The translations under genes were made by a program, and so were the position numbers. Positions 3,250-55,865 of a stretch of 64,000 nt of DNA are shown here, piece by piece; position 1 is the stretch's first letter, and every line of letters starts with the position of its first letter. A model generated the notes under the pieces. That model saw nothing but the letters and a program-made list of their open reading frames with translations, was not told the origin of the DNA and ran no database searches. The stretch covers positions 1 through 64,000 of IMG/VR virus record IMGVR_UViG_3300027754_000034. One strand, given 5' to 3'.

Positions 3250-3846
<597 letters not shown>

Positions 3847-29730: not shown

Positions 29731-32700
29731 ATGGCCACTGCACCCAGACTTAACTATTTCGATAATTCGGGTACGACTGTTAATTTGGTGGTATATACTA
29801 ATACTTCTAGTATATACTTAACTGGCGCTCTGGACGCAGATACTGTCGATGTTCAAATTAGTATCAATGGCAGTGGGTTCATATCCGATCCTACGCTCAT
29901 AGGACTAAATTTACCTAATTTTTCTGTTCCGAATTTGAATAGCTTTCCTGCTGGACTACAGTTAGAAGCAGGTCTTAATACCATAGAGTTAAGAGCAGTC
30001 GACATATCAGGTAGTGTTAGCCCAGTCACTATAGCGAGTATAACAGTATCCACAGAGTACAACGTAACACTCATAGAAGCTTCGCCAACAGGCGTTGTGA
30101 TGAATAGATTTAGTGATTATGTCGAGATAGGATGGACTCTTGCTCAAGATATTGGATTTTATACTCCGACTCCCATATCTGGATATAATGTATATGCTAG
30201 TACAGGCCCAGGAGGCACTGGTTCAGGATACTTGAGACTTAATACCCAACTCATTCCAGTAGATAATCCCTCTGAATACACGGAGTCTGAAATCGATACT
30301 AGAGAGGTATCCTACGATTTTCCGTTTTCGGAACAAGATGTGGCTCAAAGTCTTTCCATAAAATTTGATAAGGTTTCATCCAGCGATTATCAATTTAGAG
30401 AGAGATTGTATGAAAATGTTTACCCCCTGTTACTTTCCCCTAACTACAGAGTAAAACTAACCTTTTCTCGTTTAGAACAGACTAGAAGGTTTAAGTTCCG
30501 ACATAATAGAAATGATGATTTATCCTCTGGAGTTCTGAATAACGACACATTCGGGTTCATCCTCCCTTATATTCCTATTTATTATGTCGTTACGGCAGTT
30601 TATGTAGATAATGAAAGAAACACGATGGTTGAGAGCAGATATTCAGAGGAATTAGTGGGGTCCCCGCTTCCAATGGATATAAATGTCCGGGGACTTAGGA
30701 TTAGAGACCAATCCGTCGTAGCGCAGGAGTATATTAAAACTCTTCAGTCTGTGGCTCCTGAACTGTCTTTAATACCCGGATCAACCATTAGAGAAGTTCA
30801 TATTGAACCATTTTCTAATGAAATCCAAAAGTCGTACTTTTTGATGGACTTTGTTAATAGAGCAAAATCTTTTCCCGCCCTACTAGCCATTGATGACCCG
30901 TCAAATTCTAACTTTAGCATTCCTGTGGCTAACTCGCAGTATAAGTCGAACCTGAAAACTGCGTTATCAGTTCCTACAGATACCACAGTACAAGAACTCA
31001 TAAACAATGCCTTCGATTCTCTTGCTAAAAATTTCGGGGTAATTCGTAAGGGTCGTACATTAGCTTCTGTAAATCAAACATTCTATACCACAACCAAACC
31101 TTTAAGAGATCTATATGTAAATCAGGGAACAGTCGTTAGGTCCGGTACTAATCCGGGAGTTCCACGGTTTATGGCTAACGGCCAGGTTGTTTTACCTGCC
31201 GCAAGTGCATCTAGATATTATAATTATGATAAGAAAAGATATGAAATAAAAGTACCTATGATTGCCGAAACAGCTGGTGCTTCAGGCAACGTGCCTGCCG
31301 GGAGCTTAGATTCTATTGTCTCTGGATCTTTTGGACTACTTACAATAAATGAAGAAGCAGCTTTTGGTGGTACCGAAAGCCAGAGTAATTTAGAATTAGC
31401 CACAGAATCATCGCGTGTTCTTGTTTCTTTGGATACGGGTACTGCTGGTGGATATGAAAAACTAGCCGCCAGTATCCCCGGTGTCCAGGATTATGTTTTG
31501 GTAAGTTCAGGTGATGAATATATGATGCGGGATTGGGATCCCGTAAGAATGAAGCACGTCGGTGGAAAAGCAGATATATATGTTAAGGGAACTATAGAAA
31601 GAACCATTAATGAGACGTTTGCTTTTGAATTTAATATAGCTAGAAATGTTAGATTTGATGTAATAGATCCCATAAATTTAGTATTTCGTGCTAGAGATTC
31701 AAGGTTATCTGTAGATAACCCTATTCAGGAAGTGTTATTCAATCCTTCTCAAGATTTAGGACTATTTAACTTTAGCAATTTTCCAACATCTGCCTATGAC
31801 TTGATAGGGGTAGAAATAGTAGATTTTAGGACCATTAGATTAAGCCTTTTGGTTCCTCAACCAGACACTGCTCTCGATGATTTTATAACGGGTAGCTATA
31901 GATATCGCAACAACAATAAATTCACACCATCAGTCCAGCCGGTCATATCTGTATCATCTGTTGTAGGAGAAATAAGTGGTATCATAAGTCCGGGTAATGG
32001 ATATCTATTATATAAAACCCAAGACCCACTAATAGATGGCGAAAGTAGTCTAGCCAATGACTACGTAGAAATAAAACAAGTAGATAATGTGCCTTCTGGT
32101 GATGTAATAATCGTAAATGATGAGACACATGTACTAATCGGCCAAATTGAAGAGGGGTTACTTAACATTGGCATAAACCTGTCTACCATTTTGGTGCTTT
32201 CCGAAGATAGAACTACCATCTTCAATGGTCCAGACACTGAAGACCCTGATTATTCCTTAATGTCAGGCACATCGACAACTGCCATCAGGATAGTAAGAAC
32301 TATCGATTCTAATATTCCTGACGGTTCGGTTGTATCCGTGGATTATGAACATGATGAAAATTTCGAGGTTACGTACACGGTAAATGACCTTCTGACACGT
32401 CTGCAACTTGAAGTAAATAGAATGAAGCACATCACCGCTGATGTGGTAGCCAAGCAAGCTATTGCAAATCCACTAGACATACAAGCAACTATTCAATTGC
32501 GTCCCGGATATGAACAAAGCACTGTAAATAATAACATTAGGACTGGTTATTCTAATCTAATATTATCTAGGGAAATAGGCGAGCCCATTCACGTTTCTGA
32601 CATTACGGCTGTCATTGATAACTCTGATGGTGTAGACTTCGTAGTTCAGCCGTTTGCAAAATTGACTCTCCAGAATGGGGCGCAAAGAGTAAGAGACAGT

Positions 32701-33183
32701 ATACCGAGTTTTAATAATTTTATTCCCTCATTGTCTCGTGGAACTAATGCAGTATATATCTTAACAGATTCGTTCCCATTTGCTACAGTAGATAGTGGTG
32801 GTCCGGAGAACGTACATAAAGACGTATTTAAAGATAACATTGCTATGGCAACTTCACCTACCTTAAATAGGATAGGTGATATAGTAAATCAGGCATATAT
32901 TATTGGGGATGATGGTGCTGTTATAGCTGGATACTCTGATGATTTAACTATTCTTAACTCTGGGTATACTGCAAATCAAATTGACAATGTTAGAATGGAA
33001 CTAACTGCTAATAAAGTAGTGGTGTCTTTGGACTATGGGGTTACACCAGCTGACACTCCCGACTCACATTCATTTAGTGTTAGTTATTTTGTCTACAATG
33101 ACTCTGGAGTTAAGGATATTATTACTTCAAGTGTTGAATACTTAAACCCAGGAAATTTAACGCTTACGTTTAGAAAGGCCTAA
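29731..33183 (+). CDS. Baseplate J-like wedge protein
   Basis: PGSTIREVHIEP, DSLAKNFGVIRK, AETAGASGNVPAG, GGTESQSNLEL, GTAGGYEKLA, IGEPIHVSDITAVI...GVDFV; RBS aagga. Confidence 0.85.
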   Translation: MATAPRLNYFDNSGTTVNLVVYTNTSSIYLTGALDADTVDVQISINGSGFISDPTLIGLNLPNFSVPNLNSFPAGLQLEAGLNTIELRAVDISGSVSPVTIASITVSTEYNVTLIEASPTGVVMNRFSDYVEIGWTLAQDIGFYTPTPISGYNVYASTGPGGTGSGYLRLNTQLIPVDNPSEYTESEIDTREVSYDFPFSEQDVAQSLSIKFDKVSSSDYQFRERLYENVYPLLLSPNYRVKLTFSRLEQTRRFKFRHNRNDDLSSGVLNNDTFGFILPYIPIYYVVTAVYVDNERNTMVESRYSEELVGSPLPMDINVRGLRIRDQSVVAQEYIKTLQSVAPELSLIPGSTIREVHIEPFSNEIQKSYFLMDFVNRAKSFPALLAIDDPSNSNFSIPVANSQYKSNLKTALSVPTDTTVQELINNAFDSLAKNFGVIRKGRTLASVNQTFYTTTKPLRDLYVNQGTVVRSGTNPGVPRFMANGQVVLPAASASRYYNYDKKRYEIKVPMIAETAGASGNVPAGSLDSIVSGSFGLLTINEEAAFGGTESQSNLELATESSRVLVSLDTGTAGGYEKLAASIPGVQDYVLVSSGDEYMMRDWDPVRMKHVGGKADIYVKGTIERTINETFAFEFNIARNVRFDVIDPINLVFRARDSRLSVDNPIQEVLFNPSQDLGLFNFSNFPTSAYDLIGVEIVDFRTIRLSLLVPQPDTALDDFITGSYRYRNNNKFTPSVQPVISVSSVVGEISGIISPGNGYLLYKTQDPLIDGESSLANDYVEIKQVDNVPSGDVIIVNDETHVLIGQIEEGLLNIGINLSTILVLSEDRTTIFNGPDTEDPDYSLMSGTSTTAIRIVRTIDSNIPDGSVVSVDYEHDENFEVTYTVNDLLTRLQLEVNRMKHITADVVAKQAIANPLDIQATIQLRPGYEQSTVNNNIRTGYSNLILSREIGEPIHVSDITAVIDNSDGVDFVVQPFAKLTLQNGAQRVRDSIPSFNNFIPSLSRGTNAVYILTDSFPFATVDSGGPENVHKDVFKDNIAMATSPTLNRIGDIVNQAYIIGDDGAVIAGYSDDLTILNSGYTANQIDNVRMELTANKVVVSLDYGVTPADTPDSHSFSVSYFVYNDSGVKDIITSSVEYLNPGNLTLTFRKA

Positions 33184-34078: not shown

Positions 34079-36394
34079 ATGACTATCATCGTAGACTATA
34101 TAGTCACAGTTCTATCGGATAAAACTATCCGAGTCCTATTTCAAGAAGAAGTAAACCCGAGTAACGCTTTAACAATATCTAACTATGCTTTTTCTGTATT
34201 GCCTGGTACCAGTTATCTGCCTTCTCTAGTGGAGGCAAAATCCTTTAATACTGATAATAGACAGTACGAACTCATATTTTCGGAATCATTCACTCACACT
34301 TCTGTTTATTCTGTTCAGATATCTGGGGTTTCTACTCCAAACGGCGATGGTGTTGTCACTCCTTCTGCCCATAACTGGACTGCCAACGTTCCGGCAGGAG
34401 CAGTACCGCTCTTATGCATATTCTCTATTTTGGGGCACTGTGACCTAGTGTTTGATAGAGAGGTAGGACAATACTCTTCCGGGGCTTCTGGAAGCATAAC
34501 TAATGGCGTTGACCCTAGCGACTCTTTAATACTTGTTCCTTGGAACTCTAGCATACCATTAAATAACGTTAGATTTCAAATTCCTGCGACTGTAGATTCT
34601 GGTGATGAGTGGTATGTCTCATTTATTGATATACTTGATATTAGCCAAAATCAATCATTAGGAACGATTAAATTAAGCGTTCCGGACACCATCCCGAAGC
34701 CCCTCACTTATTCGGAAGCCACCACCATCCGTACTACTAACTCATTCTTAACAAATTATAACTACTATTTCGGATTCAATAATATAAGATTATTTTTTAA
34801 TTTTGCGACAAATGCTAGCGTTTATGACACTACGAATTACAATATTTATCAAATTGAAACTCATCTAAGCCCCGACAATTACCACTTCGTGACTGAGCCC
34901 GATTGTACAAATTTGGTAGAATTTTGTGACTTATTAAATGACATAAAATTACAATATAATAAACATCTTCTAGCTCCTGGCGTCCATTTGATCAGGGACC
35001 CTTCTCAATTAGTAGTGACTCAGAATGCTATGGACATGGAATCTGCTTATCTATTGATATTAGATCTATATGAGAAGTATAGAGGTCATGCTGAATCAGA
35101 ATCTTTACATAATTCTAAAGATGGAATAAACTTGCCGAATGATGGGTTACCGATTAAGGCAGCCACAGTCCTGTACGATTATGCTAATTCTCTTAAGGCT
35201 TCCTTTAATTCTCACTTAACTATAGAATATTTGGTCCCATTTGTTTCTTACCCATTTTTGGGCGCTATTTCGTCCGATTTTAGTAGTTTTCCGGGCAATC
35301 CGTTAAATTCTATTAGTTCTTGGAGTGCAGACCTTAGAGTCAAATCTCGTTCTCCTCGTACTCAATACAGAATAGAGTGCACTGTTTCATCTGAAGATGG
35401 TAGTAGCACTACTGATCTTTTAACAGGTACTTCACTAGTGAAGTCAGCTTCATCAGAAGCTTCTCTAATTAGTCATACTTTTTTAAATACGGATTCTGTT
35501 GTTATTACGAGTGATCATGAATTTTTTAATTTCGAAAATCAATATGAATATAAGAACGAAGGAAAAGCTTTAGAGTATGAAGAATCTGAAGAATATTCAT
35601 CTATCCAATCTCTCTTATGGGCTTTGCAAGAGGCTTGGATTCAATATGATTCACATAGAACAAATCAGTCTCATTACTTTCTGGATACCATTAATTTCGT
35701 TTCAGGTTCGGATATTCCTACTATCGATACAATAGTAGATTCAGTTAATAAGTTAAGAGATAAATATTTAAATCATAAAATTGGTGCCAAGTGGCACAAT
35801 ATTCCGGACGATTCTTATTTTAAAGCTGCTTACGCTACTGATATTCATTCAGCTATTAAGCTATTGTCTAAAATAAGATCTTCTATGAATCATCATACTA
35901 ATAATGGAGTTTTACATAACGGGTCGAGCCAAGAGTGGATTTCTGCTCCTTTATTTGATTCTATCGTGTTTAGGACGGGATATCAGAAAATAGATGCTGA
36001 TTTGACTTTAGAGTTTCCAGCTGTTGTAAAGGTGGTTTATTTGGGAGCACCCTCCAACATCTTCTTTGAACAAAGATTTTCTTATACTTTTAAGGGTGTA
36101 GGTTTTAACCCTCACATTTCGGATGTGGTGCCTATTCCAGCAGTAAGCTGGTATAGGCAAAATAGTGGATATTCCTCGGATAACTTGCAAGTTTTCTTTT
36201 CTAAGAAAATGGAGGAACTTTCCTTAGATAATGTGTCAATACTACCGGTCACTCCAGGGGATTCTATTTACATAAATAGAAGAATGTGGATTTCCGAAAA
36301 CGTAATAGAATTGGGTATTGCAGGCATGTCAGCAGCCCTTTATACTTTGAACATCAGTGGGATTTCAGATAAAGCGGGGAACCAGGTCTCGTAA
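34079..36394 (+). CDS. Structural protein with Ig-like domains and 6 His-pair helical repeats
   Basis: Ig-like termini (IRVLFQEEV...YSVQISGV; LQVFFSKKM...YTLNISGISDKAGN) and repeats such as LLNDIKLQYNKHLLAPGVH. Confidence 0.75.
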   Translation: MTIIVDYIVTVLSDKTIRVLFQEEVNPSNALTISNYAFSVLPGTSYLPSLVEAKSFNTDNRQYELIFSESFTHTSVYSVQISGVSTPNGDGVVTPSAHNWTANVPAGAVPLLCIFSILGHCDLVFDREVGQYSSGASGSITNGVDPSDSLILVPWNSSIPLNNVRFQIPATVDSGDEWYVSFIDILDISQNQSLGTIKLSVPDTIPKPLTYSEATTIRTTNSFLTNYNYYFGFNNIRLFFNFATNASVYDTTNYNIYQIETHLSPDNYHFVTEPDCTNLVEFCDLLNDIKLQYNKHLLAPGVHLIRDPSQLVVTQNAMDMESAYLLILDLYEKYRGHAESESLHNSKDGINLPNDGLPIKAATVLYDYANSLKASFNSHLTIEYLVPFVSYPFLGAISSDFSSFPGNPLNSISSWSADLRVKSRSPRTQYRIECTVSSEDGSSTTDLLTGTSLVKSASSEASLISHTFLNTDSVVITSDHEFFNFENQYEYKNEGKALEYEESEEYSSIQSLLWALQEAWIQYDSHRTNQSHYFLDTINFVSGSDIPTIDTIVDSVNKLRDKYLNHKIGAKWHNIPDDSYFKAAYATDIHSAIKLLSKIRSSMNHHTNNGVLHNGSSQEWISAPLFDSIVFRTGYQKIDADLTLEFPAVVKVVYLGAPSNIFFEQRFSYTFKGVGFNPHISDVVPIPAVSWYRQNSGYSSDNLQVFFSKKMEELSLDNVSILPVTPGDSIYINRRMWISENVIELGIAGMSAALYTLNISGISDKAGNQVS

Positions 36395-39300
36395 TGGCAT
36401 CACTAAATTTTTCTGGTTTTAGTTCCGTCAAGGATAGGACTGTATTTACTAACAAAGGCCCCATAGTAAAATCCCCACTTACTGTTTTATCAGGTCCTAA
36501 TCTATATATTAATTCTCCAAATGAAATAAATATCCCCACAGGGAATTTTGATGCTTCATATGTGAACAAAAATGTTCAGATTATTGGAAGTCCGCTTTCT
36601 AGAAATGATGGTACGTACCGAATAGTTGCTGTTAGAGCTTATAATATACTAAAGTTAGATGCTAATTTTGACTATGCGGATTCGGATAAGATCGAACAAG
36701 ACATAGTAAAATTAGCTAATGACATTAGATTTAAATTCAATGCGCACTTGCTTAATACTGACTCTCATGGAGAAAAGGACCTCGTAAATTCGGTTACTAC
36801 CCCTCCTGCTGTTAGTTTATCGAATGCAATAGTTTTACTTAATGAAATTAAGACAAAAATAAGTATCCATTCTCTATTAAGCGACAATCCGTTATTCATT
36901 CACAAGTTCGCTGATCCCGATTCTAGTTTATTCACTGTTGATGCATTTGATCTTGATAGTACCTTTCTTTTGGTTAATGCTTTAAGAAAGCGATACGAAG
37001 CTCACAGACAAGACATAGGAATTCATCTAAAAGATGACTTCGCGAATAGGTTGGCCATAAACTCTGCCAAAGCTTACGTAGGTTCAGGATCAATGATCGG
37101 CCCATTTAATTGGGAAATCCAAGATCCCCGATATGGGGTAGTCGCGGATGATCCTTCTGACGTAAGTGTGTTGGTTAATGGTAATCCCGCTGATGTGGAT
37201 TATGTGTTCGGGTTGCTTGGTGCCGTGGTCTTAACAGATAAACCAAATCACGGAGATTCTGTATTAGTAGATTATAAATATTTAAAAAATCCCCCTACCC
37301 AATTCGAAAGACTAAATAGCTTCGAATTTGTTTTGAATCAAGAGGGTAATAACGGATACTCCGGTGTTCCAGGACACCTTTACAGACAGAGATCTTACCT
37401 GATTAATCCTGGTGATCCTAGACTAATAAAATCGCCTTTTTCCCCAAGGAAGATAAATTATAAATATAAGGCATATGAAAATAAATATACAGCTAAGCTT
37501 AATGACCCGAGTTCATTGCTTTTAAATAGTCCTACTAACCGAATAATGTATTCGGTATTTAATGAATCGGTATTTGAGTATATAATTAGATATGATCCGG
37601 TGGTTCTTCCTAATAATGCGATTGACCCTTGGGTGTTTTATGGAGAAGGTGTTACAAGATTAACTGTCGAGTATCCAACGCTCATAATAGAAGATACTAC
37701 GAGGAATTATTCTAGTAATCCGGGTCCCCCTTTTTATTCACATTCACTAGACTTAAGATACCCAAGCTTCATATCAGCGGCTTACAGATTTTATGCAGAT
37801 TATGGATCTAATCTTACTTTAGATGGAGAATTCAACGGAGTAGGATTCGGTTTTACTGATGGTCAAAAAGCGGTAATCGTAGGTGGTTTACTGTCTGACG
37901 CAAATAACCTGTCGTCCGCCATATTTCTTTGTAATGACATAAAGAATAAGTATTCTTCTCATATTGATTCTGCTATATTTCACCGACCAAAGGATAATGA
38001 AAACATAGTACTAATTGTTGATGCATATGACTTAGATAGCTTGCTAAGACTGACGAATCATTTAGTTTCCATTTACAATAGTCACATTGTACTAGGGTCT
38101 AATTATATTCACAAGAATTCTGATTTTTCGAATTCTGTAACCTCGACAGAGGTCAATCAGTTAGAAGAAGCAATACTAAGACTCAATGAATTAAAAAGCA
38201 AGTTTAATACTCACAGAAGTTTCGTACCCGTACATTATAACAATGATAACATCAACATTGTAGATAAAGTAAAACAAGTAGGTGTATTCAAGAATGAGGG
38301 ATTTCTCGAAGAAGCGTCTGCTTGGCAGTCTTTTGCGTATAATTGGACTGTTGAGACTACGTACCGCCTCTACATTACCCCAGATGGAAATGCTAGTATC
38401 TTTCTGAGTGGTGATGTTAATCCTAGAACATCAGTGGATTATTCAGAATTACCAAATGCTTCCGATTTAGACCTGCAATTTGACCCTGTCTACCAAACAT
38501 TTTTTGGCGCGTTGGGTGATGCCAGCTCTAGCAAGAGTTATTGGAGGTTCAGTAGAATTGATGTACTACCAATAAATTCACTGCAAATACTGAAAAACAA
38601 ACAGGTAAGCTATACATTTGATACGCTTCCTGAATACACTATGAATCCGTGGATTACTGTCGGTCAAGGCGGGACTGAATATTTACTTCCCGTTGATAAA
38701 CTTCAGTTAGATTCAACGTCTTTTATAAGTAACGCCGATGCTGAATCTACAGGAAAAGTCACAGGCGAATATAGAGGGTATCTTCGGATCGAACCCTCGT
38801 TAACAGACCGGAACGTCATTACTGTAGATTTTTCTTTATTCAGCCCATTTTATAGCTTCGGTGTAGATAATCGATCTTTAGGAGTTCATATAGGAGATGG
38901 TACTTTTGCTACGCAATTGTGCTTCTTACAGGCTAATCCTAGTCCCGCTCATATAAGAGGATTGGTGTATGAAGGAGCCTTTTCGATTTCTACGGGAGAC
39001 ACAGCCGTTTTCTCTGTGGATAACGGCCATATTATAGTGGTTACAAGCCCAAATAATATAATTACTGTTAATGACTTAGTAGTTTTAATTAATTCCCAGA
39101 GTGGCTTAAATATCGCTTCCGTTTACCAAAATCCATATACATTGCAAGAAACTATTCAATTTACCAGTATTAACACTGGTTCTGGTAGCAATCTAAGAAT
39201 TATAAGTGGTCCTATATTCGATAAACTCGGAATTCCAGTAGGAATCTTTATATTTGGGAGTGATACTCAGCCTGAGTATAAATTTGGTTATACTGGTTTA

Positions 39301-42300
39301 AGTATTCCGAACTTTGACGATCCAACTTGGTTAACTTCCGGATCTCAAAAGTCAGAGATGTTAGAAAGAACACTAGTAATTACTGACAATAGTGTAATAG
39401 ATTTTAGGTCTTACACTCAGTCGAATCCTCTAGTCGTAAATCCGGTCATAATACCAAATGAAAACTGGAAAGTAGATTTTAGATTTAAACTAACTTCATT
39501 TGAGTCTGGCAACACTATTGTTACTCCTGGTAATTATAAATTTTGTGGTGCTCTAGTTAATTTAGATGAAGGACCTAATGGAAAGAATTTAGAATTACAC
39601 CTGTCGATAAGTCCAATAGATGAAAAGTATGCTGTAATTTATTCATTCAATAATCTAACCAATACATTAGAGGAAGTGGCGGCTTTCGGATTCAACTGGG
39701 GTGACAATAAAAATCACTCATATAGTATTTATACCGATAAGGTGAACGATAATTTATCTTTCTTTATAGATGGTGCGTATTTCGGTTCCTTCACATATTC
39801 AGGATTAAAAAATGGGTCTTATGGTCCCTCTTTAACATTTGGTTCTGGAGGGTCCCTTCTAAACAATGGGGATCTTGCTTCAGCAAAGTCCACTACTGAA
39901 TGGAATTCTTTGTGCGTAATCCATGATTCTACTGTAGGCAACTCATATCTTCAATCTCAAAGATTCATGGGGTTGTACCGTGGAGGTCCTATCGATAGAC
40001 TTTCTTCTTATTATCTTTCTCAGGTAGACTGGAAACAACCGCATTCCTATAGAATATTACGAGATCCTATTAGTGGGGTAAGTGTTTATCTAGATAATTC
40101 GGCAGCTCCTGTCATTTCTGCTTCTTTTGACGTGTTAACTCTCCCTTTGAGCGTTTTGGATTTTCTTTCTGGAATAGTCCCAAGCGGAAATTTTATCGCA
40201 TTTGGTTCTTTTAATCAGCAAGAAATATCCAGGTCTATATGGCTTGATGACATTAAATACTCTATTGGAAAATTAAACGATACGAATGGGTTCGTCCCCC
40301 CTCACCAAGTTTTAAACCAGTCAAACTTGGTGAGTTCCTATGAGCATTTGAAACTAAAATCCGTTCATTCTCACCATGGATTTAGTTCGTACTCTGAGGG
40401 CACTCCTACAGATGACCTCTTAGCAAGCGATGATGTACAAGGGCTAATTACTTTAGGGGAGGGAATTCCCTTAATAACACAATCACAAAATATTCCGAAT
40501 TTGGGTGGTCTTGTTACAGACGTTACGCCCTCTGATTCCATAGCCGCTGCAAGCTTCATATTCCAAAATGGTCAGGTATCGAATTTTTCTGATGACCTTG
40601 TAAATGTCGCTGACATTGATGCAGTTTTAAGTCCCCTGCAGTCATTAAATAACTTAATAAGTGAAACCAATATATTAAGACTAAAATATTTAGATCACAT
40701 TTCTAAAACTAATTTCGGAGTGTTTGTAATTCACCAGAATGCTGACTTGGTTAATGATGTAGTTAGCGGTCCAGTAGCACCTGGAGATTTGTCTGGCCTC
40801 ATTAATTGTCTTAAGGATTTACGTGATGAATATAACTCGCATAGAATAGAAGCAACTGTTCATTACAACGATGATACCTTTCACGAAGTCGTTTTTGCTG
40901 ATCCCACTGATTTAGAATCTTGCATTAACTCACATAACTTATTATCAGAAACGTTAAATCTTCACATAAAAAGCTACTTGCCACATAGGTTAAGCGGAGA
41001 AAGTTCTGACAAGGTTCCTTACATACTAGCATCCCTAAATTTATTTAGGGATTTATTTCACTCCCATATGACCAATGAAAATGGGAACTTTGTGCACAAA
41101 GATATGGGAGTCGATTCTCCTGATACGAATAATGCTAATTTCTTAGTTACTGAGTATGTAAATGATATTAGTCAGGCATTCCCTCAGATAAAAGCATTGA
41201 TTGAAGTTTTTAACTTTCATCTGTCCAATAAGACACCACACGATAATATTTTTGATATTACAAATACGATTTCTTTACCGTATCCTAATGGTATTGATGA
41301 CCTGTACAACCAAATAATCATTCTGACTACGAAATTTAATGATCACTTATCAAACACTGGTGGTGCGTATCATGACGGAAATGATATATATAACATCTTC
41401 GCTGCAAACGCGAATATAGAATATTTAGTAAGATACCTTTACAGTGCAAGAGACCTACTGAACATTCATGTTAATGATTCTTCACTACATAACTTCTTAG
41501 ATGACGATAATCAGTACTTAAATGAACTGAATTTTCTAATAAATGGTCCTAAAACCACATGTAACCCTTCCGATTATTGTACATTTGCGAATGAACTAAA
41601 AGAAAAATTCATAAACCACTTTAAGTCGAGTACACACTTGACTGTAGACTTCTTAAACGTTGATTTCTTAGAAGCTCAACCAAACGCCGTAAATCTTAAT
41701 ACAGCCATGGATCTGGTTACTTCTTGTTTGATTTCGATAAATCAACATAACCAGTCTTTGGTGAACGAGTTACAAGCGCATAATGGAATAGATGATGTGA
41801 ATGAAGGCTTTACATCTATTAGTTATAACCCGTTAAGCTTAGTCTTTATGTACGTGAGTCAGGTTTGCGAGTTATTTAATCAACATATTGATTATAAAGA
41901 GTCTCACGTTAAAACTACTAGCTCGATACAATTCGGGAGCGGTCTTTCATTACAGGATAGCGTCGATAATTTAAATATACTTAAGTCTTCTTACAATGAC
42001 CATTTATTGAGTCCCGGAATCCATGTTAGGAACGATACGGCAAACGCCATAACTTCGCCTGATGCGTCCGATTTAGGTTCTCTCATAGTGTTATTAAACG
42101 AGACTGTAACCAAATATAATCAACATAGAATTCGACCTGGTGTTCATTCTAGTACTGCTATCATAAAACTCTCATCTCCTCCAAATTCCTTATATGATGG
42201 TTTGAAGATATGGACTATCGATTCAGGGACTCCGAATTTGATTTCGTCATTTTCTGATGATGAAACATATAAAATACATGGGTTAAGTAACAGTAAAACA

Positions 42301-43062
42301 CTAAAATTGAATTATTCCGGAGTAAACCTTCCAGAGAATATTTCAATTTGCAGTGTCAACACTGGCCCATTTCCTCTTATTCATAACACTTATTTATTAG
42401 TGTATTTGAATTATGCTAATGAACCAGTAAGGGTGATCTTTACATCCAGTGAAACAACAGGCCAGGAAGTAGTAGATAAAATAAATAATACTTCGGGAAT
42501 ACCCCTAAATTTCGCTAGTTTATCTACTGATCAAAGAATAACTCTCACTAACCCCACATCTGGGGCCGGAACGTCTTTATCTGTTGATGGAACTACTCTT
42601 GACGTTCTGGGATTTAGAAATTCTCAGCCAATACCTTGGGCTCTATACGCTGATGATTCCACCTCCGTATCAGTTGGTGTTGTGTCTTCTACCCCGGATT
42701 ATTTATCATATACTACAACAGGTACAGGCACCAAGACTGCTTATGTGAATTCAAATGGGTTGACTGACTCGGTATCCCTTGGTTTCTCAATAAAATATAA
42801 GATAAAACTTAATACTTGGTCTTACGATGCTAATGGAGAGACCGGAATCTTCATAGGGTGTTCAGGTAAATCGGGTCCTGGATTCACAGTAGGTTTGGGA
42901 TTTGGGGAGTTTTTTGGGAATAAGACAGTATATATGAAAGATATGAATTCCGGAAAGATTTTAGCTTCAAAGGTATTCAATTGGGCGGATGGGGTGTTTC
43001 ATGAATACATCATCGAAAGATCAATGCTTGATGATTCCATCATGTTTAAAATAAAATACTGA
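36394..43062 (+). CDS. Giant (2222 aa) baseplate/fibre protein with beta-sandwich domains and 18 His-pair helical repeats
   Basis: TAATG-coupled; repeat LxNxLKxxYNxH-x(5-11)-HxxxDxxN; repeated FNWxDxxxHxYxI lectin-like beta segments. Confidence 0.8.
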   Translation: MASLNFSGFSSVKDRTVFTNKGPIVKSPLTVLSGPNLYINSPNEINIPTGNFDASYVNKNVQIIGSPLSRNDGTYRIVAVRAYNILKLDANFDYADSDKIEQDIVKLANDIRFKFNAHLLNTDSHGEKDLVNSVTTPPAVSLSNAIVLLNEIKTKISIHSLLSDNPLFIHKFADPDSSLFTVDAFDLDSTFLLVNALRKRYEAHRQDIGIHLKDDFANRLAINSAKAYVGSGSMIGPFNWEIQDPRYGVVADDPSDVSVLVNGNPADVDYVFGLLGAVVLTDKPNHGDSVLVDYKYLKNPPTQFERLNSFEFVLNQEGNNGYSGVPGHLYRQRSYLINPGDPRLIKSPFSPRKINYKYKAYENKYTAKLNDPSSLLLNSPTNRIMYSVFNESVFEYIIRYDPVVLPNNAIDPWVFYGEGVTRLTVEYPTLIIEDTTRNYSSNPGPPFYSHSLDLRYPSFISAAYRFYADYGSNLTLDGEFNGVGFGFTDGQKAVIVGGLLSDANNLSSAIFLCNDIKNKYSSHIDSAIFHRPKDNENIVLIVDAYDLDSLLRLTNHLVSIYNSHIVLGSNYIHKNSDFSNSVTSTEVNQLEEAILRLNELKSKFNTHRSFVPVHYNNDNINIVDKVKQVGVFKNEGFLEEASAWQSFAYNWTVETTYRLYITPDGNASIFLSGDVNPRTSVDYSELPNASDLDLQFDPVYQTFFGALGDASSSKSYWRFSRIDVLPINSLQILKNKQVSYTFDTLPEYTMNPWITVGQGGTEYLLPVDKLQLDSTSFISNADAESTGKVTGEYRGYLRIEPSLTDRNVITVDFSLFSPFYSFGVDNRSLGVHIGDGTFATQLCFLQANPSPAHIRGLVYEGAFSISTGDTAVFSVDNGHIIVVTSPNNIITVNDLVVLINSQSGLNIASVYQNPYTLQETIQFTSINTGSGSNLRIISGPIFDKLGIPVGIFIFGSDTQPEYKFGYTGLSIPNFDDPTWLTSGSQKSEMLERTLVITDNSVIDFRSYTQSNPLVVNPVIIPNENWKVDFRFKLTSFESGNTIVTPGNYKFCGALVNLDEGPNGKNLELHLSISPIDEKYAVIYSFNNLTNTLEEVAAFGFNWGDNKNHSYSIYTDKVNDNLSFFIDGAYFGSFTYSGLKNGSYGPSLTFGSGGSLLNNGDLASAKSTTEWNSLCVIHDSTVGNSYLQSQRFMGLYRGGPIDRLSSYYLSQVDWKQPHSYRILRDPISGVSVYLDNSAAPVISASFDVLTLPLSVLDFLSGIVPSGNFIAFGSFNQQEISRSIWLDDIKYSIGKLNDTNGFVPPHQVLNQSNLVSSYEHLKLKSVHSHHGFSSYSEGTPTDDLLASDDVQGLITLGEGIPLITQSQNIPNLGGLVTDVTPSDSIAAASFIFQNGQVSNFSDDLVNVADIDAVLSPLQSLNNLISETNILRLKYLDHISKTNFGVFVIHQNADLVNDVVSGPVAPGDLSGLINCLKDLRDEYNSHRIEATVHYNDDTFHEVVFADPTDLESCINSHNLLSETLNLHIKSYLPHRLSGESSDKVPYILASLNLFRDLFHSHMTNENGNFVHKDMGVDSPDTNNANFLVTEYVNDISQAFPQIKALIEVFNFHLSNKTPHDNIFDITNTISLPYPNGIDDLYNQIIILTTKFNDHLSNTGGAYHDGNDIYNIFAANANIEYLVRYLYSARDLLNIHVNDSSLHNFLDDDNQYLNELNFLINGPKTTCNPSDYCTFANELKEKFINHFKSSTHLTVDFLNVDFLEAQPNAVNLNTAMDLVTSCLISINQHNQSLVNELQAHNGIDDVNEGFTSISYNPLSLVFMYVSQVCELFNQHIDYKESHVKTTSSIQFGSGLSLQDSVDNLNILKSSYNDHLLSPGIHVRNDTANAITSPDASDLGSLIVLLNETVTKYNQHRIRPGVHSSTAIIKLSSPPNSLYDGLKIWTIDSGTPNLISSFSDDETYKIHGLSNSKTLKLNYSGVNLPENISICSVNTGPFPLIHNTYLLVYLNYANEPVRVIFTSSETTGQEVVDKINNTSGIPLNFASLSTDQRITLTNPTSGAGTSLSVDGTTLDVLGFRNSQPIPWALYADDSTSVSVGVVSSTPDYLSYTTTGTGTKTAYVNSNGLTDSVSLGFSIKYKIKLNTWSYDANGETGIFIGCSGKSGPGFTVGLGFGEFFGNKTVYMKDMNSGKILASKVFNWADGVFHEYIIERSMLDDSIMFKIKY

Positions 43063-44628: not shown

Positions 44629-44644
44629 TGTATATTTAATATGT
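44613..44644 (+). repeat. End X, copy 1 (32-bp direct repeat)
   Basis: gcgcttaactttttagtgtatatttaatatgt, identical to 46556-46587; contains the last codons and stop of the collar gene, a TATATT box and ATG. Confidence 0.95.
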
Positions 44645-46541
44645 GAGAAAAGACATTTCCGGATTATTAGTTCATATAGATTTAGATGCGACAGAATTAA
44701 AATTTGGCGTCTTAAAAGACAATCAGTCAAGATGTGTCGTGTCTTGCCATGGGTGTCTAGAGACTCATGACTCTAAGATAATACTCTTAAAGAGTCATAT
44801 TTCAAAAAGGGAATTTTATTACTGTAGTAGCTGTTTAGGCAAAATGTCTTGGACAGAGGAAAAGAAGAAGAAAATTAAAGATTACTGGTCAGTCCCTGAA
44901 AATATATTGAAGGAGCATGAAATTAGAAAGGATAAATGGAAAAACGGAAAATATAGGTCTCAGATGGAAAATATTATCCAAGAAAGGTCTGCGACTCCAG
45001 CATTCAAGAATAAAATGTCCGTTTTATCTTTAAAGAAGTGGGAGGACCCTTCTTACCACTTAAATATCTCTGACCAGATTAAAAATAAGTGGGAAGACCC
45101 GGAATATCGTAATAAGCAGGAAGCTTATAAAACAGATGAGTGGAAGTCTGAGCATTCAAAAACGCAGACGTTACTTTGGACTGATGAAAGCTATAAACAG
45201 AACATATCACGTAAAATATCGGAAGCATGGAATGATGACGAATATAGGAATAATCAAGTAATTAAGCAGACACAGGTTTGGCTGAATCCTGATCATAAAG
45301 AAAAACAGTCACGCATGATGAAAGAAAAATGGAAAGATCCTTCTTTCAGAGCGAAATATGAAAATCTTTGGAAGTCTAAGTCATGGCGGAAAAACCTTTC
45401 CGACACTTTAAAGAAAATATGTAGTAATCCAGAATATAAAGCAAAATTAAGTGAAACCTCGAAATCTAGATGGGGAAATCCAGAATATAGAGAAAAAGTA
45501 TCAAAAGGGGTTAGTCGGGCGTGGGATGACCCCGATTACAGGCAAAATAAGGCAGAAAGTGCTAAGGCTTTTTGGGATAACGAAGATAATCGGCAAAAAT
45601 TTGCATTAATTAGAGCTGCTCAATCTGGACGTCGTTCTAATATTGAAAAAATAGTAAGCGAAATTTTAAAGGGATTAAATATTAATTTTGAAGAACAAAA
45701 AGCTCTTGGTGTTTATGTTTTTGATTTTTATCTCAATGAATATGATTTATATATAGAATGCCAGGGGGAATATTGGCATTCTTTGCCTGGTAGAAAAGAA
45801 AGAGATGCCGCAAAGTATACTTATCTTGAGAAGGCAGCTCCCAAGTCCAGAATTTTATATCTATATGAACATGAATTTATAAATCCCAATACTATATTAT
45901 CTAAATTAATGAATGCCACGATACCACAAAACATGCCAGGTAATGACTTTATTGAAAGCTTCAGATTTCAGGATCTGCTTATTAAGACAGTAGAAAGAGA
46001 GGAAGGAGCAAGTTTTTTAAATGCTTTTCACTATGCGGCGAATGGTAGGGCCGGGAAAAGTATTTATGGAGTCTATTTGGGTAGTGTGTTGATTGCTGTA
46101 GCGAAGTTTTCTTCCGTAATACGCCAAGAATCAGCTTCGTCATTAGGACTTCATCCGAAGAATGTTTGTGAATTGGATAGATTCTGCATTCATCCTAGAT
46201 ATCATAAACGAAATTTCGCTAGTTGGGTTTTGTCTAGAGTGACTAAAATGGTATTAAGTGACACTAGAATAAATTATATAATATCATTTGCAGATAGTAC
46301 CTATGGACATAATGGAACCATCTATAAAGCAGCCAATTGGGGGTACGTAAGTAATGTTAAGGCTGATTATTATTATGTGAATGAAGAAGGGTTTATCCTC
46401 CACAAGAAAACTCTTTATAATAGAGCAGTGAAGATGAAATGTACCGAAAAACAATATGCTGAAACACATAATTACATGAAATGCTGGGGCCGAGAAAAGT
46501 TCAAATTCATATACCCACGAATAGTAAAGACACTCTCCTAA
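44643..46541 (+). CDS. Fusion: Zn finger + 17-aa Trp repeats + Vsr/DUF559-like endonuclease + Mom-like GNAT DNA-modification domain
   Basis: CHGC...CSSC; WxDPxY repeats; SNIEKIV...FDFYL...IECQGEYWH...ERDAAK; FLNAFHY...YGVY...ELDRFC...NFASWVLSR...IISFADSTYGHNGTIYKAANW. Confidence 0.85.
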   Translation: MRKDISGLLVHIDLDATELKFGVLKDNQSRCVVSCHGCLETHDSKIILLKSHISKREFYYCSSCLGKMSWTEEKKKKIKDYWSVPENILKEHEIRKDKWKNGKYRSQMENIIQERSATPAFKNKMSVLSLKKWEDPSYHLNISDQIKNKWEDPEYRNKQEAYKTDEWKSEHSKTQTLLWTDESYKQNISRKISEAWNDDEYRNNQVIKQTQVWLNPDHKEKQSRMMKEKWKDPSFRAKYENLWKSKSWRKNLSDTLKKICSNPEYKAKLSETSKSRWGNPEYREKVSKGVSRAWDDPDYRQNKAESAKAFWDNEDNRQKFALIRAAQSGRRSNIEKIVSEILKGLNINFEEQKALGVYVFDFYLNEYDLYIECQGEYWHSLPGRKERDAAKYTYLEKAAPKSRILYLYEHEFINPNTILSKLMNATIPQNMPGNDFIESFRFQDLLIKTVEREEGASFLNAFHYAANGRAGKSIYGVYLGSVLIAVAKFSSVIRQESASSLGLHPKNVCELDRFCIHPRYHKRNFASWVLSRVTKMVLSDTRINYIISFADSTYGHNGTIYKAANWGYVSNVKADYYYVNEEGFILHKKTLYNRAVKMKCTEKQYAETHNYMKCWGREKFKFIYPRIVKTLS

Positions 46542-47812: not shown

Positions 47813-50374
47813 ATGATGGGCGGTTATGAGAATTTAGGGCCAATCATAAGCCAAAACCCCCAGGCGGTAACGCCTGGGGGCGGTAGTTATTCAGCTGATG
47901 AGAGATCATATGATTCCGTAGTATTCCAGCAGAATCATCCGCCAATGGACTGGGAGATGAATCTCATCCAGTCTGTGGTCGGCAATGCTGGTCTTAGAAA
48001 TCTAGCTTCTAAATTATTCAGCAGTACGTTCATATCCGGAAACGTATTAGAATCAAATGCTCCAGGAGCATTTTACGAATTTTTACCAGCAGTAGCTGGT
48101 AATGAAAACATTATTAGATTTTCGGCTTGTGATTTATTAGTAAACGGTTGGGCTCTTCGTTTAGAATATTCAAATACTGATGTCGATGGTAAGAACTTAG
48201 TTCAATTAACTGCTCCACCATTAACCGGTATTAGGCAGGATCTTCTAATATTAGAAGTATGGAGAGCACTGCTTTCTCCTCTCCCTTCTGTAGATAACAA
48301 GAGTCTGGGTGGCTTGATACTACGAAATGGTAATGCCAATGCTCCTGATACAGTAAACTTATCGGATGACCTAATAGACCCGAATTATCTAGCAGAGACA
48401 TCTAGAAGAGTTCAGATTCAGTATAGGATTCGCATCATAGAATCGGTAGACATTCTTTCCTATCCTGACGGCTTGGGCGATCCATCAATTACTGCACATA
48501 CGGTTCCATATCTTGGCGGTTCTGATGTAAATGGAAATGATTTGCCTGCGTACGTCTACACTGCCGTAGCTGGAGACTCAGGATTATGGCGTTCCGGGGC
48601 TGGAGACGCTGCTTCAGCCACTGATATAGGGTCAGTCGATGGCTATATATGTTCATTACCATTGTGTGTCGTAGTCAGACGTAATTCCGACACTTGGGAC
48701 AAAACCACAAATCTCAATGGTGGGGTATTAATCGGTGGAGTCAGTCCTCGACCAGACGGTTTATTTTCTGATCAGATAGCCTCGGGGGACCTAATAGATC
48801 TGAGAAAATATACTGCCTGGAATGCACAAGAATTCAAGAATGATGCTGTCGATGCATTAATGCAGAATTCCTTGTCCACCCAATATGAAGAATCTGCCTT
48901 GGGAACTGGCGGAAACACCTTCCTGATGAAGGATCCGATAGGTACTTCTTCACATATTTGGAATGCGGATGGTGTTAGAACCTCATATTCAGATAAACCA
49001 GTGGTTCATCCAATTGCGTTGTCATTTACTATTCCAATGGCAACCAATACACTGACTTGTGATCTCACTATAAATGTTGATTTGCCATGGGCTTCAGGTA
49101 TCAATATACTGGCAAATGCTCCTGCAGGAACCAATTTACTTAGCATTAGTAAATGCTTCATAAATGATGGCGTAGGAAACATTTATGATGCTTTTGATTC
49201 TTCCGTAGCCTATCACATATTAAACATAGTTTATTCTATTTCGGGAACGGAAATCGATACAGCCACCATAGAATTTAACCAAAATATTCCTGTCGGGACT
49301 GTTTTTTTAGAAGCTTTGGTAGAATATCCACCAAATGTGGGCCTTTCTAGAAATGTCATCTCAATAGATAAGGTCTGGGTTCCTAATAATTTTGATGCTT
49401 GGGTAGATACCTCGGAATTCACTGCCACATCAGATGCGGATCGTAGTAGCATAAATACTTCTTTTAATATTGATTTAGTAAATAGACAGGTTACGTTCGC
49501 TTATCCCTCGAATCTCATAAGCGATACGTTTTATAACCACACTCTCTCTCAATTCATGATCCCCGACTGTGTCGATGCAAGCAGCGTTGTGATTACAGGT
49601 AAAGCAGTGGTTGGGATTGAATATAATGCTGGTTGCACAGTCATAGAGTTTAATCCCCCTGAAATGGCTCTTGGTGTTGGACTAGCTGTCGATTATGTGG
49701 CTTATCGTCCACCAGTCCCATTAGGAATGGTGCCTTATGACTCTATCGATGTTTTTTATCAAACTCGATCGATTCAATCGATACCAGTTCCAGTAGGAAT
49801 GTATTCCCCATCATTTTATCGGCGTACAGATATTGAAAGAGTGTTCTTCATATCTTCCGGGTCTGGATCCTACGATTCAGCAGAATATGATGCTTCTACG
49901 CAATTAGCGATACCAAGACTTCCAATAGTCGATTATTCCGACAGTTTATTCTCTGGATACCATGAGTCTTCTGTCGTAACAAACGGTAATGATAATGGGA
50001 TCAGTGAAGTCTTAGTGACTGAGAAATCCTATTTGGCTTCTGACGGCTTTTATCTTTCTACCGCAGGTGGAACTACACAAGATGCTGATGGTAGGAATTA
50101 CTGGCCTTACTCGCCCAATATAATATTAAAAGCATTTAATGCTACTGATTTCAACATAAGCACTCGTCGTAAATTAGCTAGTGATTTCGTCTTGGAGCTT
50201 AAGGAAGATTTCCCATCACTTGGAAGGAAAGGAAGTCTTTATCTGGCTATGGCTACGGGTTATTCATATAACTCTCGCATAAATAAAATACATACTTCAG
50301 ATTCAGTAGAACTTGACGGAGTTTCCCTCTTCAGATTAAGGGGAAACCCACTTTATTATCGGAGGTCCTCTTGA
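47813..50374 (+). CDS. Tail fibre/baseplate anchor protein, paralog A
   Basis: YDSVVFQQNHPPMDWEMNL (DUF4815/DUF6519-like N-terminus), LEVW, ETSRRVQIQYRIR, GLWRSG, RPDGLFSDQI...DLIDLR. Confidence 0.7.
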   Translation: MMGGYENLGPIISQNPQAVTPGGGSYSADERSYDSVVFQQNHPPMDWEMNLIQSVVGNAGLRNLASKLFSSTFISGNVLESNAPGAFYEFLPAVAGNENIIRFSACDLLVNGWALRLEYSNTDVDGKNLVQLTAPPLTGIRQDLLILEVWRALLSPLPSVDNKSLGGLILRNGNANAPDTVNLSDDLIDPNYLAETSRRVQIQYRIRIIESVDILSYPDGLGDPSITAHTVPYLGGSDVNGNDLPAYVYTAVAGDSGLWRSGAGDAASATDIGSVDGYICSLPLCVVVRRNSDTWDKTTNLNGGVLIGGVSPRPDGLFSDQIASGDLIDLRKYTAWNAQEFKNDAVDALMQNSLSTQYEESALGTGGNTFLMKDPIGTSSHIWNADGVRTSYSDKPVVHPIALSFTIPMATNTLTCDLTINVDLPWASGINILANAPAGTNLLSISKCFINDGVGNIYDAFDSSVAYHILNIVYSISGTEIDTATIEFNQNIPVGTVFLEALVEYPPNVGLSRNVISIDKVWVPNNFDAWVDTSEFTATSDADRSSINTSFNIDLVNRQVTFAYPSNLISDTFYNHTLSQFMIPDCVDASSVVITGKAVVGIEYNAGCTVIEFNPPEMALGVGLAVDYVAYRPPVPLGMVPYDSIDVFYQTRSIQSIPVPVGMYSPSFYRRTDIERVFFISSGSGSYDSAEYDASTQLAIPRLPIVDYSDSLFSGYHESSVVTNGNDNGISEVLVTEKSYLASDGFYLSTAGGTTQDADGRNYWPYSPNIILKAFNATDFNISTRRKLASDFVLELKEDFPSLGRKGSLYLAMATGYSYNSRINKIHTSDSVELDGVSLFRLRGNPLYYRRSS

Positions 50375-51021
50375 AATTTTTAGTCGATAAATTCACGGGC
50401 TCCATTTCTGGGGCTTATTCCGATATTGATAATAAACCCGTATCTGGAGCAATGATAATTAGTGTTCCTTCCGACTTTAAATTCAATATAGATCCTACTA
50501 TAGATAGTCCTACTTTATCTGATTTGTTGACCCAAAAATATGCCAACATTTCTGATAAAGTCAGCGGCATTTTTCCATACACCAATACGGTAAATCAGGA
50601 ATTCATTGACCCTTCTGCAATATTGAACACTGCATATTCTAACTTATATTCCATAGGACCAAATAGACGGACCGTCCTAAAGCCTACAGGTATCCTATCT
50701 GTAGGAACTGCTGGCTCAGGTTATAGCTTTGCTAATATACCGACCGATTTTTATTGTGAGTATAATGTTTACGAAATAACTGCTGATTCTAACGGTAATG
50801 CGTGGGGTCCACCAGTCTACAGGGTTAACACATCTTTTGATCCTATTATGGATGTTGAATTTCGCTTGCTGGACAATACGGGCGCAGATTTACAAACTCT
50901 TGTGTCTGGCTATAATCAGGCTAGTGTCGGTATGTACACGGGGGATTTTTTGGTGGGAATCGAAAATCTCAGTACACGCACTTTTGTATTATCAGATTTT
51001 TGTTTGTATTGGAAAGAGTAA
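50371..51021 (+). CDS. Hypothetical structural protein
   Basis: TTG start overlapping the upstream TGA, with a GGAGGT RBS. Confidence 0.75.
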   Translation: MKFLVDKFTGSISGAYSDIDNKPVSGAMIISVPSDFKFNIDPTIDSPTLSDLLTQKYANISDKVSGIFPYTNTVNQEFIDPSAILNTAYSNLYSIGPNRRTVLKPTGILSVGTAGSGYSFANIPTDFYCEYNVYEITADSNGNAWGPPVYRVNTSFDPIMDVEFRLLDNTGADLQTLVSGYNQASVGMYTGDFLVGIENLSTRTFVLSDFCLYWKE

Positions 51022-51083
51022 AGTACACTTAAGGTCGCATCATTCCTAGATGCATACCCTTATGATGACGGAGACTATTTGAA

Positions 51084-55715: not shown

Positions 55716-55732
55716 TCGTCAGGCTTCTTTTG

Positions 55733-55770
55733 AGCTATCAATAGTGGTTATCTGACCACTATTGATAGCT
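55733..55770. promoter_or_regulatory. Perfect 16-bp hairpin upstream of the tailspike genes
   Basis: agctatcaatagtggt-tatctg-accactattgatagct, followed by tatattt. Confidence 0.8.
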
Positions 55771-55793
55771 TATATTTAGAGTTTAATGGGGTT

Positions 55794-55865
55794 TAAAACT
55801 AAATGACTCGTCCTCGTTCGCAACAGATCAACGATCCCGTTACACGTTATTCGAAGATCCCCTTA
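55794..55865 (+). repeat. 72-bp perfect direct repeat, copy 1 (leader plus first 21 codons of tailspike 1)
   Basis: Identical to 60808-60879; near-identity extends to about 100 bp. Confidence 0.96.

Follow-up and report, generated by a model that had tools for sequence, protein, structure and literature searches.

Bases 1-64000 of the 257,205-base linear IMG/VR virus record IMGVR_UViG_3300027754_000034 (the window in the following), from an uncultured jumbo phage and estimated to be ~60% complete, encode two adjacent large proteins, pA (771 aa) and pB (2222 aa), in which a unit of ~41 aa, consisting of an amphipathic helix that ends in a first His and of a loop that bears a second His, usually 7 residues on, recurs in groups of three. 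The eight triplets found in the window, each of ~125-135 residues, are best read as single-chain, parallel, pseudo-threefold three-helix domains with a six-His cluster, the most likely role of which is metal binding. On balance, we regard it as probable that the triplet is an autonomous domain of this type, with the six His most likely binding one metal ion octahedrally, and that it serves as a rigid connector. Threefold six-His sites are known in phage tail proteins, so that what would be new here is a threefold six-His site built from one chain, together with the large, undescribed family to which the triplet belongs.

The repeat unit and its counts in threes

The repeat was described with a hidden Markov model (HMM), iterated from six seed units and searched over both open reading frames (ORFs), which gave single-unit E-values down to 1e-18. 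Units were counted with an ungapped position matrix anchored on the first His, the bimodal scores of which separate true units from other His residues. A triplet-length HMM was dropped for counting because the three units are alike and give register-shifted overlapping matches, and automatic gap-filling of missed units led to false positives (e.g. the SFSDDE segment after the array), so that exceptions were checked by eye instead. The layout thus obtained is 3+3 units in pA and 3+3+12 in pB, which reproduces, with coordinates within ~20 nt, the count made by eye in a first-pass annotation of the sequence. The second His is found 6-12 residues after the first in all 18 units of pB, and is absent in one unit of pA (H379), an omission that the same annotation had already spotted. 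Chance or low complexity as the source of the repeat is ruled out by the E-values together with the invariance of the repeat in orthologues.

From 2067 units collected from 191 proteins, large hydrophobic residues were found at positions -17, -14, -10, -7 and -3 with respect to the first His. The spacing follows the heptad pattern 3-4-3-4-3 and places the first His itself at the next core 'd' position. Upstream of the first His, conservation is also seen for Asn at -9 (71%), a basic residue (Lys or Arg) at -6 and an aromatic one (Tyr or Phe) at -3, and downstream of it for Asp at +11 and Asn at +14. In 1247 of these units (60%) the second His occupies +7, and in 49% of the units an Asp is found four residues past the second His. 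The alignment of pB residues 1-700 with those of 50 orthologues (51 sequences, mean column identity 48%) contains only 30 invariant columns, 12 of which are exactly the His pairs of pB triplets 1 and 2. Throughout the wider family, the first His is present in 1011 of 1022 unit matches and a His occupies the second-His column in 912 of them.

The number of units is itself constrained. For pB, 54 homologues were found (1283-2591 aa, on contigs of up to 436 kb), and in its orthologues the first two arrays always contain 3 units each, while the C-terminal array measures ~148, 270, 400-415, 515-550 or 785-790 aa, corresponding to 3, 6, 9, 12 and 18 units. The only orthologue found for pA (32% identity) has a 3+3 layout as well. 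The count was then extended to 135 new proteins among the best 150 of the triplet-profile ranking, some entries being gene fragments. The unit total obtained automatically is divisible by three in 109 of them (binomial p = 1.4e-29), and the arrays consist mainly of 3 (115 arrays), 6 (37) or 9 (13) units, with others of 12, 15, 18 and 24. Both the repeat and its grouping by threes are, therefore, real and strongly non-random, and the divisibility by three that had been put forward as a check on homologues is seen both as steps of three in the orthologues and in these wider relatives. Among the orthologues with unusual counts, P0012 turned out on inspection by eye to be an apparent exception due to a missed ninth unit, and in P0046, P0055 and a '4+5' group unit 1 of a triplet is followed by a large insertion (~270 residues in P0055). 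When triplets are counted off from the start of an array, every large insertion, and also the gene split described below, is located behind unit 1 of a triplet, which was seen independently at least three times.

Predicted fold, split triplets and permuted triplets

In the AlphaFold2 model of pB 1-700 the predicted local distance difference test (pLDDT) score is 93-98 over both triplets, which sit between beta-rich domains, in line with the earlier suggestion that triplets are inserted as modules between such domains. The lone triplet pB 94-232, modelled from 110 aligned triplets, is compact (pLDDT 96; predicted template modelling score, pTM, 0.90), with helices at residues 4-26, 49-67 and 94-112 of the model and long, confidently predicted non-helical segments between them. 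The intramolecular three-helix bundle that had been proposed from the sequence is thus recovered, at the level of a structural prediction, as a compact single-chain three-helix domain. Long loops between helices of ~20 residues are compatible with a parallel arrangement and return connections. We propose that the three helices would form a parallel coiled coil of pseudo-threefold symmetry from a single chain, in which the ~20-residue loop that follows each helix returns along the bundle to where the next helix begins. The 'd'-position His and the loop His of each unit, namely 3+3 imidazoles, would then be brought to one end of the bundle.

Support for the parallel packing comes from covariation in 522 triplets (effective number, 489; background standard deviation, 0.025). 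The strongest inter-unit couplings are those between position -6 of unit 1 and position -11 of unit 2 (0.172) and between the equivalent positions of units 2 and 3 (0.171). For the equivalent pair from unit 3 to unit 1 the value is 0.076, and for the reverse and the intra-unit pairs it is approximately 0. Since -11 is a heptad 'g' position and -6 the following 'e', the couplings correspond to the g-e' contacts of parallel coiled coils, running cyclically from unit 1 to 2, from 2 to 3, and from 3 back to 1.

The three units of a domain are not always found on the same polypeptide. In two pB orthologues, P0036 and P0038, the layout is 3+3+10 and the protein stops ~20 residues past the tenth unit of the last array. 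In both contigs, which are independent, the ORF two genes downstream contains exactly two units, homologous to pB units 11-12, along with the SFSDD segment located after unit 12 in pB. Two polypeptides thus share the last triplet, with one unit on the large protein and two on the small one (a 1+2 split), and the division falls where insertions occur within a triplet. An unrelated gene for a protein of 364-375 aa lies between the gene of the large protein and that of its two-unit partner. The initial claim that the repeats occur only in multiples of three holds, therefore, for the assembled domain but not for the single polypeptide. The two proteins would be joined to each other once the bundle is complete.

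Permutation provides a second type of variant. In 27 of the 31 isolated triplets that are without the third second-His loop, helix 1 is immediately preceded by a His-loop in which Asp and Asn are spaced as usual, as opposed to only 38 of 198 complete triplets with a His before helix 1. The first triplet of pA is of the permuted type, so that the second His missing from its H379 unit is compensated by the upstream loop and three first His and three second-His loops are found in all eight triplets of the window. Judging from their sequences, the permuted domains keep three first His and three His-loops each. A distinct subfamily (P0064, P0075, P0082, P0085 and P0095) has compact triplets of ~106 aa with unit spacings of 41, 41 and 24, in which the third unit is regularly without its second-His loop, even within long arrays.

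These variants also bear on the quaternary arrangement. If pA and pB were homotrimers, each unit might pair with its own copies in the two other chains to form one six-His site per unit; the site of phi11 Gp45, discussed below, is built that way. Trimers are also common among fibre proteins whose genes follow those of the baseplate wedge. Such an arrangement, however, would leave without a reason the counts in threes, the 10+2 split and the retention of three His-loops under permutation, the monomer model is compact with the high pTM value already given, and the units joined by the directional coupling (i to i+1) are different ones. Moreover, the domain is also present in a TcA-like protein, namely P0128 (L016:2050-12162), a metagenomic Tc toxin subunit of 3370 aa with two His6 triplets at approximately residues 1518-1750, beside a PA14 domain and in the part of the protein where variable surface domains are located. 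TcA-like Tc toxin subunits form pentamers, making a fold that requires three chains unlikely in P0128. By taking all these points together, we consider pairing between identical units of three chains to be very improbable, and a domain closed within one chain is preferred.

The proposed six-His cluster and known threefold His sites

The closest known system is that of Gp45, the receptor-binding protein of Staphylococcus phage phi11, in which Fe3+ is bound on the threefold axis, where the trimeric coiled coil terminates on its C-terminal side, with octahedral coordination by His42 and His50 (His42-X7-His50) of the three chains and a second shell formed by Arg43 and Glu46 (PMC4901313). As proposed for the triplet, a His at the C-terminus of a coiled-coil helix lies on the axis and the second His follows 7-8 residues downstream in a non-helical segment. 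The units of the triplet show this combination of a helix-terminal core His and a second His 7-8 residues on, and the two systems also share the type of host, a phage baseplate or host-recognition protein. They differ in that the His pairs of Gp45 come from three identical chains, whereas those of the triplet are in tandem in one chain (two in the split form), as indicated by the monomer model and by the counts in threes. In addition, the spacing is +8 in Gp45 and mostly +7 in the triplet, the loop of which returns to start the next parallel helix.

A second group of sites, found in T4 gp37 and gp12, P2 gpV, phi92 spikes and R-pyocin fibres, is formed by His-X-His motifs in intertwined beta homotrimers, according to the summaries given in PMC4901313 and PMC11705849. 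Such sites, which hold iron or zinc in T4 gp37, gp12 and P2-type spikes, share with that proposed for the triplet an octahedral coordination with two His from each of three positions about a threefold axis, and the presence of multiple sites per protein. However, they are built on beta structure in a homotrimer, whereas the triplet has an H-x6-H arrangement at the end of a helix in a single-chain helical domain: the two His are 6-12 residues apart, in most cases 7, and an alpha-helix terminates at the first of them. The first-pass annotation had drawn its analogy with T4 gp37 and gp12; the idea of two His per position about a threefold axis is indeed shared, but the helix-end Fe3+ site of phi11 Gp45 is a closer parallel than these fibres (PMC4901313).

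By analogy with Gp45, the six imidazoles of a triplet would most likely coordinate one metal ion octahedrally, be it Fe, Zn or Ni, making the triplet a single-chain version of the Gp45 Fe(His)6 lock, with two sites predicted in pA and six in pB. The domains would then serve as rigid connectors, stapled by metal, that link one beta-rich domain to the next in giant baseplate or fibre proteins. They are gained and lost as whole triplets. A catalytic metal site is rejected because six protein ligands would leave no open coordination position.

An alternative role for the His residues, which we consider rather unlikely, is, in place of a permanent metal site, that of a pH- or metal-sensitive switch, or of a hydrogen-bonded network, that would control a conformational change of the baseplate on host contact within what is still a real single-chain pseudo-threefold domain. 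The evidence on fold and conservation fits this possibility equally well, and the Asp four residues past the second His and the Asn at -9 could contribute to a polar network. However, six ligand-free imidazoles buried at the end of a bundle would be destabilising, the same combination of a helix-end and a downstream His binds Fe3+ in a solved structure (PMC4901313), and the conservation of exactly three His-loops under permutation suits a fixed coordination number. Binding of one metal ion is, thus, the preferred role of the cluster.

Several results weigh against closed, metal-binding triplets of the Gp45 type. Of the 135 automatic unit totals discussed above, 26 cannot be divided evenly by three (miscounting or fragmentation probably explains some of these, part of which were inspected), and no signal was found in the similarity of units at lag 3. 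No sequence homology to Gp45 was detected, searches of the PDB chains with the triplet profile (E <= 1) and with the single-unit profile (E <= 10) returning chance matches only. Structural comparisons gave a best match, with an exhaustive aligner, to gp41-5 (PDB 3o3x; 116 of 139 residues), the Z of 7.2 being within the noise range for helical models. In arrays of at least six units, unit 3 is coupled to the unit that opens the following triplet (z 6.0) as strongly as it is to unit 1 in the closure pair (z 4.1), and one reverse pair is found at z 5.0, so that covariation alone is no proof of closed triplets in long arrays.

The latter values bring in the possibility that lone triplets are closed while long arrays, such as the 12 units of pB, form a continuous helical solenoid, with His pairs that line a groove or bind several metals in a different way. 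The degenerate inner units of the pB array are also consistent with it. On the other hand, tandem duplication of triplets would by itself yield the coupling between unit 3 and the next triplet, array sizes are 3, 6, 9, 12, 15, 18 and 24, and the insertions and the gene split respect the boundary after the first unit of a triplet. A solenoid is therefore considered improbable, and closed triplets are the more probable arrangement in long arrays as well.

Structural analogues can be recognised for parts of the proposed fold. The designed single-chain five-helix bundle gp41-5 and the class I fusion cores have, as is proposed for the triplet, three parallel core helices with return segments in the grooves, but these segments are helical and a His site is absent; with a Z within the noise, the analogy is one of topology only. 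The BARA domain of Vps30/Beclin 1 (PDB 3vp7, 4ddp) is also a single-chain pseudo-threefold assembly of three tandem repeats with one helix each; its alignment is weak (Z 5.1-5.5, again within noise for helical models), and, unlike the triplet, its repeats consist of a beta-sheet and a helix, a His cluster is lacking and the function is unrelated. Foldseek searches of the PDB with the 700-aa and 139-aa models gave no match, as did fold searches of BFVD and ESM Atlas. In the AlphaFold DB, 2 of 2.3 million clusters match, A0A7Y5UA43 and A0A7Y5NXF0, both uncharacterised. They resemble the triplet in fold (template modelling score 0.78, root-mean-square deviation 2.2 over 126 residues, 22% identity) and probably belong to the same family, but carry no annotation or experiment.

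Family size, genomic setting and other features of the window

A search of 1.84 billion representative proteins with the triplet profile retrieved 2013 clusters (at 50% identity) with E <= 0.001, and 1226 with E <= 1e-10. In profile scans of pA, pB and ten diverse relatives, the triplets are covered by no Pfam, PHROG or NCBIfam family, and the PDB has no match over them either, which agrees with the initial impression that no named family could be recognised; a literature search found no paper describing the domain. Megablast and tblastn searches of GenBank phage records with pA and pB gave no match. The family member P0081 is located elsewhere in a 342-kb phage contig, and a tblastn search of phage GenBank records with it matched one uncultured record.

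The family thus defined is large and uncovered by Pfam, PHROGs, NCBIfam and the PDB, and occurs in giant, otherwise unannotatable tail proteins of uncultured jumbo phages. A six-His threefold site made from one chain instead of three would be a new route to a known chemistry, with a copy number constrained to threes and with natural permuted and split forms. A fragment of 130 residues is suited to metal analysis and crystallography, and may provide a natural scaffold for the design of single-chain metal sites and for split-domain docking. A broader proposal, which is offered only tentatively, is that of a widespread, undescribed metal-stapled domain that arose as a trimeric Fe(His)6 coiled coil fused into one chain, with the 1+2 split acting as a metal-dependent snap connector. 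If so, the metal-stapled domain would be present in over 2000 protein clusters, from jumbo phages as well as Tc-toxin-like proteins, and the 8 sites per copy of pA and pB would place a substantial load of bound metal on the virions. Should the metal be iron, a second, helical class of iron sites would have to be taken into account in estimates of phage-borne metal.

Almost all large ORFs of the window are on the + strand. The two proteins are encoded close to a baseplate gene, the order being the Baseplate_J-like wedge ORF, a 272-aa ORF, pA and pB (table 1), and within the whole genome record the domain is confined to pA and pB.

Table 1. Coordinates of the His6 triplets, of the proteins that contain them and of related features. 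Positions are those of the window unless preceded by a contig label.
Feature	Position	Strand	Basis or remarks
Baseplate_J-like wedge protein, 1150 aa, two genes upstream of pA	29731..33183	+	Pfam PF04865, E 2.5e-11; PHROG 6 'baseplate wedge subunit', E 1e-19
pA, 771 aa, two His6 triplet domains, remainder beta-rich	34079..36394	+	ORF and translation
His-loop before helix 1 of pA triplet 1 (H262, D266)	34844..34906	+	Stands in for the second-His loop missing after the third helix; permuted domain boundary
pA triplet 1, first His 296, 337, 379; second His 303, 344	34907..35275	+	HMM and matrix
pA triplet 2, His pairs 526/532, 566/573, 606/613	35597..35956	+	HMM and matrix
pB, 2222 aa, six His6 triplet domains between beta-rich domains	36394..43062	+	ORF and translation
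pB triplet 1, His pairs 118/125, 159/170, 204/211	36688..37065	+	Six His invariant in 51 sequences; AlphaFold2 model
pB triplet 2, His pairs 523/530, 564/573, 607/614	37903..38274	+	Six His invariant; pLDDT 93-98 in the 700-aa model
pB triplet 3 (array units 1-3), first His 1435, 1483, 1524	40639..41025	+	Register inferred from insertion and split points of orthologues
pB triplet 4, first His 1558, 1609, 1651	41008..41406	+	Matrix; helices degenerate, both His kept
pB triplet 5, first His 1692, 1742, 1785	41410..41808	+	Matrix
pB triplet 6, first His 1831, 1870, 1911	41827..42186	+	Matrix; in a subclade its units 11-12 sit on a separate small protein
Two-unit small protein, 230 aa	L004:12789-13481		Aligns with pB 1852-1957, 39% identity, E 2e-25
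Two-unit small protein, 165 aa	L013:8853-9350		Two units and SFSDD segment

The tail region of the window is largely unannotatable with profile libraries: nine large ORFs (572-1769 aa) at 7025-27699 and 47813-60788 (+) are without a PHROG or without a Pfam match, one library having been scanned per ORF. Directly after the tail genes, a 632-aa ORF (44643-46541, +) has a C-terminal Mom-like DNA-modification domain (PF25680, E 1e-25), and also shows HNH- and Vsr/DUF559-like endonuclease signatures. At the left end of the record, an ORF on the minus strand (1-1400) that runs off the end codes for a collagen-like stretch of Gly-X-Y repeats over 300 residues long, with a 9/27-nt periodicity at 423-1077 and a GC content of 0.51, compared with ~0.38 elsewhere, and then for a 51-aa C-terminal repeat in 2.6 copies (a 153-nt tandem at 1-397, 96% identical). 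The locus of P0036 likewise contains a collagen-repeat protein (L004:555-1439) near its pA and pB genes. Finally, a 198-aa ORF (3250-3846, +) contains, at 3564-3775, acidic low-complexity tandem repeats, rich in Glu, Asp, Ser and Pro, with periods of 15-54 nt.

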